20,274 nt of DNA from Azolla caroliniana. Its lineage: Eukaryota; Plantae; Polypodiophyta. A program made the position numbers and the translations under genes. Each line of letters starts with the position of its first letter. The stretch's first letter is position 1. A model generated the notes under the pieces. It saw only the letters and a program-made list of their open reading frames with translations, was not told where the DNA came from and ran no database searches. Below are positions 4,785-18,200 of the stretch, in pieces. Location of the stretch: NCBI GenBank assembly GCA_043228905.1, contig JBHGNT010000574.1, positions 1-20,274 of the forward strand. Reading direction: 5' to 3'.

Positions 4785-6497
4785 CACCCTCTTTAAAATG
4801 GTTATTCTTGAATGATGTACAAACACCAAGGCAGGATCTTGCATCCAATAGATTTTTGCTAGGAATCATAGAGGCATGGGATGTGATTAAGTCATTCTTG
4901 CTTAAGGACAAGCCTTCTACGTGGGATGCGCTACTTAATCAACCTCTTCTTGCCAAATCTTTATTTCTGGATAATGCAGGAAAAGTGTTGGTCTTGAGAA
5001 CTCACCTTGCATGGGGAAAATTGGATAATGGGCCTGCTGCATCTGTAAGAATGTGGAATCATTTTTAGCAAATGTCATAAGAAGATCGTCTTGCACAATT
5101 ACAATCAGTTTATGGTGCCAAGATAATGATCGCTAGTATATCAACAACATATTCTTTGTTTTCTACAACCTTTCAACCCACAAAGGAACATATGTGGTTT
5201 GGATGCTTCATAAATGACACATTGGTGGCTGTCAAGGCAGTTTCACCTAACGGGTGTGCTTAATACTTTAAGGTCCTAGACAATCATACATTACAACCTT
5301 ATACCTTAGAGTGCAGTTATCTACAACACTTGCGAAAGTGCTAAATTTGGAAAGAAATGGATGCTCGATCCTTATCCTTCAATTGCGTATACGTGTGATA
5401 TGTTGTGGCTATATGCAAAAGACCCGGTTGCAAGATTAACATGGGATCCGAGGGGCTGGTTTTGGTCACATTCCTTGGGGGAATAGATCATAAAGGTTCC
5501 TTTCTTTCAATACTTAGTAAAACTTGGAAGAGCACTATTGCTTTCTCAGAATGCAAGGATACCAACAACTTAGAAACATTGGACCACTTGGGGGATCTCA
5601 ACTTTGCATTTGAAAACCTATTGGAAATGGATTTGGTCATTCAAGGGGCCAACTAAATTTATTCTCTTCAGATGGCTATTAGTGCATATGACCTTACCAG
5701 TTGATCACTCATTGAAAGGGAATGTAACACCTAATATTCAACAATGTGGCTTTTGCCACAAAGCGCAAGAGACTATCAAGCATGCCCTTTGGTCATGTTC
5801 CTTGGCTCAACAAGTACGGAATAAAGTTCTTTCGTTATTTTTAACAATCAATGTTGGTTGCTTATTTTCATGGGGATCAACAATGTGGGGAGTGTTACAT
5901 TCCAGTTTGATGTTGTATGAGGCAAACGATGTTCAAGAGTCAATGATGGTACATAATAGAAGATTGATATTGGTCAGCCCCTTTCAACAACCTCAAAAGT
6001 AGGCGCGATTTGCCCATATACGAAAAACAGTGACTACAATAACGTTATGGGCATTATGGAAATGTCGATGCAATTGACGTTATGATGCGACATATCAATG
6101 TCTCTCAGATGTCTTACGTGAGATATGGGAGAACTTGGTGGCAGTAGTCCGCGACCAGTATGACAACATGCAGGGTTCACCAAAGACTGTGAACAAGAGA
6201 AAGAAGAAGCACCTTCACTTATGGAAAAAGTTACCCCTATTCTCTGAGTCAACTCAAGGGCCTCAATGGAACCATCAACTTCCTTGGACCCTTTCTTGAT
6301 TAACAGTGAAGCACGACAGAATGCAAAAAAATAACATTTTACAAAGTTCTAGCTTTGGTGTTAGGATTATTGTATATCATTGTACATGAAAATTGTAAGG
6401 TTTTCGCCAGATAAGCTTAAGTTGTAGCATTCACATGTTTTTCTTAATACTAATGAGGAAAATCTTTGAAGAAAAAGAAAAATAAATAAAAATAAAA
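4785..6497 (+). mobile_element. 5'-truncated, degenerate LINE (zf-RVT region) with perfect 15-bp TSD
   Basis: Translation YWKWIWSFKGPTKFILFRWLLVHMTLPV...CGFCHKAQETIKHALWSCSLAQQV is a zf-RVT, homologous to the LINE at 549-2060. It has an A-rich tail at ~6469-6497. The TSD AATTGTTAAATGGGT lies at 4770-4784 and 6498-6512. Confidence 0.9.
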
Positions 6498-8710: not shown

Positions 8711-8880
8711 GATCCGGAGAAGAACCAATCAGAAACGAGGGAGCGGATCGCTGATGGAGAGCCGTTGGATGAAGAGGAGGAAGGGGGGGGGGCGATAGTG
8801 GACCGTTGGATCTCAAGGAAAGGAAAAAGAAGGCGGGAGAAAGACGAACGAATTTTGAACTCGCCTCTCTTCTTTAAATA
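8711..8880 (+). promoter_or_regulatory. Histone gene proximal promoter (CCAAT box, octamer-like, nonamer/MSA-like, E2F-like, TATA-like)
   Basis: AACCAATCAG at 8723-8732. AGCGGATC at 8742-8749 (1 mismatch to the plant histone octamer CGCGGATC). Reverse-strand nonamer CATCCAACG at 8763-8771. A second reverse-strand TCCAACGGTC at 8801-8810. GGCGGGAGA at 8832-8840 (E2F-like). TTTAAATA at 8873-8880. The region is locally GC/CpG-rich. Confidence 0.7.
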
Positions 8881-8918: not shown

Positions 8919-9416
<498 letters not shown>

Positions 9417-9452: not shown

Positions 9453-9477
9453 AAAACGGTGTATTTATACACCACCA
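9453..9477 (+). promoter_or_regulatory. Histone mRNA 3'-end stem-loop (histone3/SLBP-type element)
   Basis: AAAAC GGTGTA TTTA TACACC ACCA. The 6-bp stem (9458-9463/9468-9473) is perfect and opens with GG/CC. It has a 4-nt U-rich loop, an A-rich 5' flank and an ACCA 3' flank, and starts 42 nt after the H3 stop codon. Confidence 0.85.
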
Positions 9478-10394
9478 TTATTCTGATAATGGATTACTCT
9501 TACCTTCTGCGTTTGGAAATTCCTTTATATCTTTGTGTTTGAGTGTGGTATGAGCTTGGGAGCTGTTGCTCTCGAAACCTCCTGATAGAGAGGTGTTTTG
9601 GTAGTAAACACATTTGAACCTTTTATGACGGACGACAATATAGTAATATGTTTCAATGCTTTGCTCTCAGAATTTTCTTGACATTGTTTTGTATTAATTT
9701 AGGGTAACTGTAAAATTTTAGCAATTGAGGTTTGCACAGGTTCAAATATGGACTGTTTAGGGTTTGTCTTGTGGCTGCAATAAAATTGTTGAAGTAGATA
9801 TTATTTTGGCGAATGGCTTGCAATTGTTGTGATTCTTATTACGTAGATAGTTGAACACTAATCCAAATGTAACATGATAGTTAGCTAATACTTACCAAGA
9901 GTTTAGTCTGTTTTTTGGCTGTGTTAAATTTGATGCTTTCCATCAGTCGCCCTGAATTACAGTTGTGGCTTAAAATGTTTCAGTGGCAATAACATTTCTT
10001 AGTCGTTAGGTAGTTTCAAATTCTGCCTGAAATGTAGTATTTCTTGTCTGCCAATGTTTACTCATGATGGCTGTGATAAATAGATTGCCTGTTTTTCATC
10101 AGCGTCCATATTAGTATTTTTTTGGTGCAAAATGCTTCAATTTCTTACAACCTTTCCTTTTCATTATGTATTTGCAAACTCTGCCACATATTTACCATAA
10201 TAGTTTGGTAACGAATAGTCTTGATGTCTGTAATTAATTACTTGTTTTTCGGCAGTGTCTTTGCAAATATTATGGTGGCTTAGATAATTGCAAATTCTAA
10301 GTTAACTTGTGAATTGCTAATGCTCAATTCTACCATTACTGGTGTTCTAAAATTAATTGTGTTTTCTTGTTAATGAAATAGACGATGTCATCAT

Positions 10395-14868: not shown

Positions 14869-17800
14869 CTAGGAGTTGCATGCTCTTTCATATTTGCTTC
14901 GTAACTTCTCCAGCTTCTTTTTTAAAGTTATGCATTTGTCAACCAAAACTCTCCTTTCCTTTTGTTCCTTCTGTAACAAGTAAAAGTAAATTGCTAAGTT
15001 TGATTCATAATGTTTTTACGATACATGCTTATATTACTTTTTGTATCTGACGATTCCATAAAAACATTTAGTTAGGGCCTTAAAGATAAAGGGAATAGAC
15101 CATTTAATTATTTTGTTTTGAAAATAGTGTAGCCTTTTCTATTTACAGTACAAAGCCAAAAATGTGGCATTCTATAGCGCACATGTAAAATGTAATGCAA
15201 CTTCATGGAGCAACTCAGATAGAATTGAATTTTGATTGCCTCGAAAGTTATAACTTCTTTGTACCTCATAGGCAAACTCAAATTGTGCTGATCTATTTAC
15301 AGTAGCAATCAGAACCCTTGATTGTTTGTTCAACAAATCCTCTAAACTGTCAATCTTTTGTTGGAGCTCAATCGTTTTGGTTGCTTCGTTCTTTGCAAGT
15401 GTTTCTATACACATTCTCTGCACATCTATTTTCCAACAGAAACAATGCTATGAGAGAAAGAGAAGAATATATGAATACTATGAAATCAACATGCATTAGC
15501 ATCCAGAATGATAAGGTAACCAAAAGAATGATCATGATCAGTGCACTAAGCCCTCTAGTTAGGTTTTATCTCATACCTAAACCAAAATCAATGGTTTGAA
15601 TCCATTCCAATTCTGCAATTTAGGTTTTAAATAAACAATTACAATAACTTTAAACTTATGAAAGATATAGGCAGTAGAATTCCCTGATATTTGGTAGTAT
15701 ATCATCTCCAGTCTCCTGGTTAGATAAGTTCCCATATAAAACAGAAAGTCAAGTGTGAAATTCTGTTTCAACCCTTTCACAAAAGAGTATTTTCCATTGC
15801 ACCATTATACGCACAGATTTATACTTATCTGACAGCACACTTTTAAGAGATGATCTTTGGCTGTACGATTCTATGTTTGGATCATATTATACCCCTATCA
15901 TGGTTTTCCATTTTGGCTGCTTCAAGGCATTATTCATGTTGCACTCAATCATCTCTAACATGAAACAAAATTGAGTTCATGCTCAGCCCATCTTTCTTCC
16001 TTTATCGTCTTTGATGTTCTCAGTTATTGTTCTATTACCATCTTTGACATAGACTCATCCCAAACCTAACATGAAAGAGTTATCCTGTGAGAGGCTACAG
16101 TTCTCAACCTCTAATGAAATGCTTTCACAGATTTTCCACTCGTAGCCATCCTCAGAAGACACATATATGCCTCGAAATTTCAGATTCTACAGCAGCTCAG
16201 AGGCGAGATATCTAATGTGGTGCAAGACATGCCATCAAGAATGTGACAGCATCAGGTCTCGTTTAATTAATGAACGGACTCACAATATGTAAACACCTTG
16301 ATTACTGTGAGCCACCTGATATACATCTTGTATATGTATTTATACAATTCTAAAACTTTAATTATATGTCTGAAATAAAAAATAATATATGATGGCTTTA
16401 ATAATGTACTATAAATATACAGGACAAGAACCTTGGCATAAATTTAACTTCTAAGGATTCTTAGAACAAATTGAGGTTTCAACAATCTCTTACCAGCGAC
16501 ACTTTCTAAACAAAGCACATCTTGCAAAGATCCTCCACCATGGACACCACCGAAAACAATTAGGCGCCTTTTATGAAATGTCATTGTGTGTAGAGATCGT
16601 CCAATCATTGTTCCATTTCCTCCAATATTATTTGACGAACTGATACATGGTCTCAATACGTGCCAACATGTCCAAATATTTCTTTTGACATCAAAACTAT
16701 AGACATCTTCAAGGTATTTCTCTCCATCAAATCCTCCGTAAACCACTATATGCTCTCCAACAACTTCCATTACATGATGCCTTCTTGGTGATGGTCCTCC
16801 CTTCGTGTCAAGGAGAACCCAACTCAAACTCTGTAAGTCTATACAATGAAGATCATTTAAATGCAAAGTACCATCAAAGCCACCAAAAATGTACATTTTG
16901 TCTCCAACAATAGCAGCTCCATGACCACGGCGTTTTGAGGGAGGAGTTCCAAAATATTCAGGACAGGACCATGACAAAACGTGCAAATCAAATATCCAAA
17001 CCTCATTCAAATGGCCATTAGATGTACTATAGCCACCAAAGACTACCATGTATCGTCCTTGATAAAGGCAACTCGTATGTTGAGATAATGGACATGGTTT
17101 TGAACCTATTGAATATCTGGGCTGAGACCACCTACAAGAGTCTGAAAATATCGTGAGCATCCATGTTTTTCATGTATATTAAAAATAGATGACTACAAAG
17201 AAATTAAAATCAACAAAGACTCACTTCCATCATCTGAGAAGGATAGGATCGAAAGGTCACATGATTGCAAACTTCCATTAAAGCCACCAAACACAATCAT
17301 TTTATTCTCAAATGCACATGCTGTGTGGTTCCATATTGGTCCAGTACATGCACTTCCCATCTCCGCAGAAATAACAGGAACTCTCCATTTACCAGTTTCT
17401 ATGCAAGAAACAGAAATCGTATCAAATAAAATAATTCAATCTGTGATTCACAAGTAAATCTAAACTATCGATCTGTCATAAGTCAGTGGCACGAGCACAA
17501 GCAAGCCTGATCTAGAACCTCTAGCAAAGCAGCATCATAATAGAAGATATAAGTCGGTCTTATAGATGGAATTTGGTCTAAGTTTTATAGTTGGGTATCC
17601 CCATTATCTGTACTTTGGTTTCAAAGACACTTAAAAGAACACCATGTTACTATAATGAAAAACAAAATCCTTTTTATGGGCTTGGTACCTACAAAATTTA
17701 AAAGTAATATTGTTACCTGTATCAAAAATATATACATCATCGAATGAAGTTTCTCCATTATAACCACCAAATATAACAATGAATGTCGATAATTTATGAC

Positions 17801-18200
17801 CAGAAAAGCAGGAAATAGGTACACTAGTATGTCCAGCACGAGATAAAGGTCCATCCTCAGCTTCATGAAAGATAGGAGTCCATTGCAAGTTGACTGTACA
17901 AACCCATTACAAAATCTTGATTCCAACTAATTCTTAAAGATAGACAGTACAAAAACCAGAATATCATATTTTCCCTTTCTTACAGACACACCTTCCAGAA
18001 AAGACAGGTTATGCTGCAGTAAAGATGCAGTATTGTCTATAATTTTCTGAGAAGCATCTGCTGACCCATCTTTTCCATTGTCAAATGATGAATAGAGCTG
18101 CTCCTTCTCAACATTCAGTTTTTGACATTCTCTCAACTGCACATCAATTAGCTTCATTTTCTCTTCCAAAAGATGCATACTCCGTTGAGCACTATGGGTC
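14869..18200 (-). CDS. Kelch-repeat (beta-propeller) protein with flanking coiled coils, spliced; probably the 3' half of the Sfi1-repeat gene
   Basis: Phase-consistent GT-AG exons: 18200-17992 (coiled coil MHLLEEKMKLIDVQLRECQKL), 17893-17717 (LQWTP...RAGHTS...IFGGYNG...DDVYIFDT), 17398-17225 (GKWR...WNHTACAFENKMIVFGGFNG), 17141-16494 (four Kelch GG repeats), 15425-15265 (TIELQQKIDSLEDLL), 14970-14869 (KEQKERR...LEKLRSKYERACNS*). There are six F/YGG motifs in total. Confidence 0.88.

Follow-up and report, generated by a model that had tools for sequence, protein, structure and literature searches.

Histone mRNA 3' ends in animals, green algae and land plants

In the earlier textbook view, plant histone messages end with a poly(A) tail. 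The reference for histone messages that end in a hairpin is the metazoan system of the RF00032 element, SLBP, the U7 snRNP and CPSF73, whose 16-nt hairpin is built from a 6-bp stem with two basal G-C pairs (GGCYCU/AGRGCC) and a 4-nt loop with U at positions 1 and 3, is flanked by an A-rich stretch on the 5' side and by ACC(C)A on the 3' side, and is found some tens of nucleotides past the stop codon of intronless core histone genes. A purine-rich downstream element at a fixed distance pairs with U7 snRNA in this system, and the mature message, which has no poly(A), ends 4-5 nt past the stem. Histone 3' palindromes with a GGUGU...ACACC-ACC core are described in the literature for the green algae Volvox and Chlamydomonas.

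A study using poly(A)-inclusive long reads identified histone genes that are more than 80% poly(A)-less in Chlamydomonas, Physcomitrium patens, Adiantum capillus-veneris and Cycas debaoensis (Genome Biol 2026;27:146, PMC13130582), and RF00032 motifs were present in 33 of 51 such genes. The same study located SLBP genes in the lineages of the moss, the fern A. capillus-veneris and the cycad C. debaoensis, reported that Selaginella and angiosperms have lost SLBP, and observed that some moss, fern and cycad histone genes yield poly(A)-less as well as polyadenylated forms (PMC13130582). The wide distribution of stem-loops, SLBP, LSM10 and LSM11 among plants is charted in an October 2026 preprint that does not name ferns (10.64898/2026.10.14.759114), and our literature search returned no paper naming both SLBP and Ceratopteris.

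The locus described here was first noticed in a sequence-only reading, which started from the premise that land plants are generally described as lacking the histone stem-loop, a premise that has been outdated since March 2026 (PMC13130582). Since that paper already covers the fern, moss and cycad system, the claim of novelty fails, and the stem-loop is a correct rediscovery: a further example, in further fern genomes, of a system already known in ferns. The suggestion that the SLBP pathway persists in seed-free plants is supported by the results below and agrees with the published long-read data (PMC13130582).

The histone H3 gene and its promoter

The window, that is the whole stretch of 20,274 nucleotides of Azolla caroliniana DNA analysed here, contains an intronless H3 gene with the following features.

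8725-8811, + strand: overall span of the histone-promoter-like motifs upstream of H3, assigned by motif resemblance
8725-8729, + strand: CCAAT, promoter-like motif upstream of H3
8743-8749, + strand: octamer-like GCGGATC, promoter-like motif upstream of H3
8763-8770 and 8804-8811, + strand: nonamer-like CGTTGGAT in two copies, promoter-like motifs upstream of H3
9006-9416, + strand: intronless histone H3 gene of the replication-dependent type, 136 aa (open reading frame; Pfam Histone, 7e-49)

The encoded protein carries the residues A31, F41, S87, L90 and S96 of the replication-dependent type, and at least 10 genes of Ceratopteris richardii (GCA_020310875.1) encode exactly the same protein. 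The G+C content at third codon positions is 0.81 in the H3 coding sequence of the window; the corresponding values are 0.53-0.59 for the ten paralogs of Ceratopteris and 0.68-0.71 for Adiantum nelumboides. The best match to the coding sequence is an ENA metagenome contig (locus L028) with 89.5% identity, and a comparison of the window with 220 kb of Ceratopteris DNA found no repeats in common. Motifs of the CCAAT, octamer and nonamer type are S-phase elements of plant histone promoters, and their likenesses upstream of the window gene would fit an S-phase expression of this H3. The nonamer core also occurs 144-167 nt upstream in five of the ten Ceratopteris paralogs and in one H3.1 gene of Arabidopsis halleri.

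The stem-loop behind the H3 gene

The hairpin AAAAC-GGTGTA-TTTA-TACACC-ACCA downstream of the H3 gene is made up of the following parts.

9453-9457, + strand: A-rich 5' flank AAAAC, with A positions that are conserved in ferns
9458-9463, + strand: 5' arm GGTGTA of the 6-bp stem
9464-9467, + strand: 4-nt loop TTTA, with U at positions 1 and 3
9468-9473, + strand: 3' arm TACACC of the 6-bp stem
9474-9477, + strand: 3' flank ACCA; cleavage and mature 3' end predicted at about 9477-9479 on the model of the animal system

The sequence-only reading had placed this hairpin at 9453-9477, 42 nt past the H3 stop, and both its sequence and its position proved exact, with 41 nt lying between the stop and the stem and the first stem base being the 42nd base past the stop. 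The geometry claimed for it, a GG-based 6-bp stem, a loop with U1 and U3, an A-rich 5' flank and an ACCA 3' flank, is likewise present in full and is accompanied by a match to RF00032. The 6-bp stem and 4-nt loop appear in both the minimum free energy and the centroid structure computed by RNAfold (-5.6 kcal/mol). The element thus has the length, the stem and loop sizes, the two basal G-C pairs, the loop uridines, the kind of flanks and the distance from the stop of an intronless core histone gene that characterize the metazoan hairpin, from which it differs in the sequence of the stem (GGUGUA/UACACC in ferns), in a top pair that is A-U in ferns and U-A in metazoans, and in a 3' flank that reads ACCA in the window and ACCCA in metazoans.

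In a local search the Rfam model RF00032 (Histone3) aligns with positions 9453-9498 at 26.9 bits (E 6e-6), which falls short of the gathering score of 34 bits, and a whole-window Rfam search at the gathering score returned no match. About 20 of the 46 positions of the model belong to the part downstream of stem and ACCCA flank, which was shaped by animal sequences, and the window element stays below the cut-off because the model was trained on animals rather than because the element is weak. Four Chlorella histone stem-loops, undoubted members of the family, reach 20.1-24.8 bits with the same model and that of Physcomitrium 14.6 bits, all less than the window element, so that the Chlorella hairpins, like the fern element, score below the gathering cut-off.

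Taken by itself, a hairpin of this kind could have arisen by chance in an AT-rich 3' UTR. The loose pattern GG-N4-TNT-N5-CCA was observed four times in the window against 2.4 expected, such GG...CC patterns thus being about as frequent as expected; as the loose pattern is not rare in 20 kb, a lone hairpin is weak evidence. The strict fern consensus derived below occurs once in the whole window.

Recurrence and conservation in ferns

The question of chance is settled by comparison with other fern genes, for which a sample of 13 H3 genes was assembled, consisting of the window gene, ten genes of C. richardii and two of A. nelumboides. The same element follows the H3 gene in all ten sampled Ceratopteris loci encoding the identical protein, and both Adiantum genes carry the same hairpin with the 3' flank ACCA. 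In these two ferns the element reads (A)A(C/T)-GGTGTA-TYTN-TACACC-ACC and lies on the sense strand 18-40 nt past the stop; across 14 genes the distance from stop to stem-loop is 18-41 nt. The sequence-only reading had named as a weakness that it rested on a single copy, which the ten of ten Ceratopteris and two of two Adiantum genes remove. Within about 330 kb of fetched loci the strict consensus is found solely just behind H3 stops and on the sense strand. The recurrence behind 12 of 12 other fern H3 genes therefore means that the hairpin of the window is not a product of chance, and with its 22-nt block nowhere else in the roughly 330 kb, an origin by chance is refuted by the comparison of paralogs and orthologs and retains a practically negligible probability.

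The coding sequences of the Ceratopteris paralogs are 76-82% identical to one another and to that of the window, and synonymous sites are therefore essentially saturated. Outside the element the fern 3' UTRs show background information content and no alignment, while positions -3 to +19 hardly vary. On the 5' side, all 13 fern genes have A at -2 and nearly all have it at -3; on the 3' side, 18 plant sequences all begin with AC and 16 of them continue with C, conservation ending after +3/+4. Within the fern loop, U1 is present in 12 and U3 in all of the 13 genes. The A-U top pair, which the sequence-only reading had pointed out as unusual, is real and typical of ferns (12/13 genes), the exception being one Ceratopteris paralog in which GGTGTG-TATA-CACACC represents a compensatory change of the top pair. 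In an alignment of 18 plant sequences (A1), 108 of 108 stem positions are paired, five pairs are invariant, the GG...CC base is kept in 18 of 18, and the top pair is A-U in 12 sequences, U-A in five and G-C in one, so that compensatory change, expected in the sequence-only reading, was found in this pair.

The hairpin is under strong, strand-specific purifying selection across paralogs and species. Such selection could in principle act on DNA, where the palindrome might, for instance, bind a dimeric protein or signal replication or termination and would have no more than the look of an RNA hairpin, and the stem arms do form a perfect inverted repeat whose opposite-strand hairpin is equally good. 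The 5' flank AAC, the 3' flank ACC and the loop uridines U1 and U3 are, however, asymmetric and keep a constant orientation relative to the gene. In addition, a protein partner is known for the RNA family that the element matches, and the top pair of the element shows a compensatory substitution. Asymmetric flanks and constant sense orientation imply that the constraint acts on RNA, and a palindrome acting as DNA, rejected on asymmetry, orientation and covariation, is highly improbable.

The H3 genes sampled in the three fern genomes yield a sharp consensus, AAC-GGUGUA-UYUN-UACACC-ACC(A), which should be useful for annotating replication-dependent histone genes in ferns, for adjusting expression values that were obtained by poly(A)-selected RNA-seq and for the design of binding and processing assays. 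Searches for other histone genes or further stem-loops found none within 10 kb of the ten Ceratopteris H3 genes and none within 6 kb of the two Adiantum H3 genes.

Other lineages and genes lacking the element

Outside ferns, an H3 gene of P. patens is followed by ACGGTGTT-TCAC-AACACC-ACCA with the stem GGUGU/ACACC. In a histone cluster of Chlorella ohadii (L027:900-4800), the H2A, H2B and H3 genes and a fourth gene, probably H4, share CAACT-GGTGTT-ATTC-AACACC-ACC. The resemblance of the stem to a green-algal version, seen in the sequence-only reading, is thereby borne out by the GGUGU/ACACC of four Chlorella histone genes, and the fern element, the Chlorella hairpins and the palindromes of Volvox and Chlamydomonas have the GGUGU...ACACC-ACC core in common. 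The Chlorella hairpins are set apart from those of ferns by a U-A top pair, the loop AUUC, the 5' flank CAACU and a CACGGAA that is conserved about 12 nt past each of the four hairpins and is likely a downstream element for U7, whereas the fern genes have no such downstream element. The moss loop UCAC and the Chlorella loop AUUC each miss one of U1 and U3.

A hairpin of the GG...CC type, with one mismatch allowed, was found neither within 300 nt of two H3.1 genes of A. halleri nor within 300 nt of two divergent, intron-containing H3 variant genes of Ceratopteris, the latter having AATAAA about 210 nt downstream. The absence from variant histones that the sequence-only reading had led one to expect is confirmed for these two Ceratopteris genes. 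They are located at L025:6001-6539 and L025:18509-19047 (C. richardii MU261891.1) and are annotated as a single fused 237-aa protein; the N-terminal tail of the variant lacks about nine residues of the K9-K18 stretch and starts with MARTKQTTRKQLAS.

Decayed look-alikes stand behind two further H3 genes. In Sphagnum magellanicum (L024:6735-6760) the sequence GGTCCA-TTTG-TAAACC contains two C-A mismatches, and the ENA contig that provides the best coding match to the window has GGTATA-CGTG-TATGGT at L028:780-805 and no intact hairpin. Judged by their sequences, these look-alikes suggest a loss of the element in single genes or lineages. P0115, a 5-kb animal-type tandem histone repeat, was rejected as a relevant comparison.

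The region downstream of the stem-loop

Two features were recorded downstream of the hairpin in the window.

9475-9492, + strand: second small hairpin CCAUUAU-UCUG-AUAAUGG, overlapping ACCA (-5.5 kcal/mol; reached by 0.7% of shuffles)
9779-9784, + strand: AATAAA, 306 nt past the stem; read-through transcripts might use it as an alternative poly(A) signal

The sequence-only reading saw no purine-rich downstream element in the window, and this holds for all 13 fern genes, in none of which a purine-rich histone downstream element was found at a fixed distance; in this respect, and in the score of the window element below the RF00032 gathering cut-off, the ferns are unlike the metazoan system. The region past the fern stem-loops is T-rich (41% T). 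Its best fixed-position signal is a G at +12 in nine of the 13 genes, which is weak (Bonferroni 0.056). An unbiased motif search returned a weak motif, YCUG(A/C/G), which is enriched within 30 nt past the fern stem-loops, beats 40 of 40 shuffles and takes variable positions, a placement unlike that of a U7 ruler element; its instances in the window at 9477-9510 are TTCTGAT and CTTCTGCG, and it is found in the same region of the loci L001-L010, L021 and L022. The 32 nt past the stem-loop in 14 genes fold better than mononucleotide shuffles (p 0.003) but only slightly better than genomic control windows (p of about 0.05), and the significance of the second hairpin is doubtful. As signals, the G at +12, the YCUG motif and the tendency towards a second hairpin are unproven.

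In a search of RNA runs, none contained more than 13% of the sampled words of the locus. The contigs obtained from four RNA runs comprise conserved H3 coding sequences of relatives and one low-depth contig covering 9502-9669, the 3' end lying outside this coverage.

Formation of the mRNA 3' end

The window element is very probably a histone 3' stem-loop of the SLBP/RF00032 kind belonging to a replication-type H3, for which we propose poly(A)-less processing. The structure of the element, its position and the selection on it are shown by the comparisons above; that SLBP binds it, where the transcript is cut and that the message of the window gene lacks poly(A) are inferences. On the model of the animal and green-algal systems, the nascent H3 transcript would fold into the hairpin, and SLBP would recognise the second G of the stem, the loop uridines U1 and U3 and the flanks. 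The pre-mRNA would then be cut a few nucleotides past the stem, at about 9477-9479, leaving a poly(A)-less message that would rely on the complex of SLBP and hairpin for its export, its translation and its degradation after S phase. Some of the transcripts may escape this cut and receive a poly(A) tail at a site further downstream. The likeness to the moss, fern and cycad system is one of motif type, RF00032-type hairpins standing behind fern core histone genes in both cases (PMC13130582); C. richardii and A. nelumboides belong to the same family as A. capillus-veneris, and their hairpin is identical to that of the window. Compared with the species of that study, which have transcript-end data and an SLBP gene, the window is known from sequence alone (PMC13130582).

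Poly(A)-less processing has to be weighed against a reading in which SLBP or some other factor binds a conserved hairpin while the mRNA is mainly polyadenylated downstream; the hairpin would then influence stability or translation from within the 3' UTR, or provide a second, little-used site of processing. The AATAAA at 9779-9784 and the lack of a recognisable U7 downstream element would agree with mainly downstream polyadenylation, as would those moss, fern and cycad genes from which both forms arise and the case of a cycad that keeps an SLBP gene and has solely polyadenylated histone mRNAs (PMC13130582). Yet just four of the 13 fern stem-loop genes have AATAAA within 600 nt past the stem-loop, and conservation ends exactly at ACC(A), which is the mature end in animals. 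We regard predominant polyadenylation of the window message as distinctly unlikely, and cleavage next to the hairpin as the preferred reading.

A purine-rich element at a fixed distance, so plain in Chlorella, is missing from the 13 fern genes, which have no more than the weak YCUG motif and the slight tendency towards a second hairpin. It may therefore be speculated that fern histone pre-mRNAs are processed through the SLBP hairpin with no downstream element for U7 to pair with, the cut being positioned by SLBP together with general cleavage factors, or by a very divergent U7. This proposal is tentative, and on balance we consider it unlikely; if true, U7-less processing in ferns would be an intermediate between the animal type and ordinary polyadenylation.

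Other features in the window

Two further features of the window lie on either side of the H3 gene.

5604-6002, + strand: open reading frame with a zf-RVT domain, remnant of a non-LTR retroelement
16444-17888, - strand: exons of a Kelch-repeat gene

The best matches of the Kelch exon are ENA proteins, with 93% and 79% identity.
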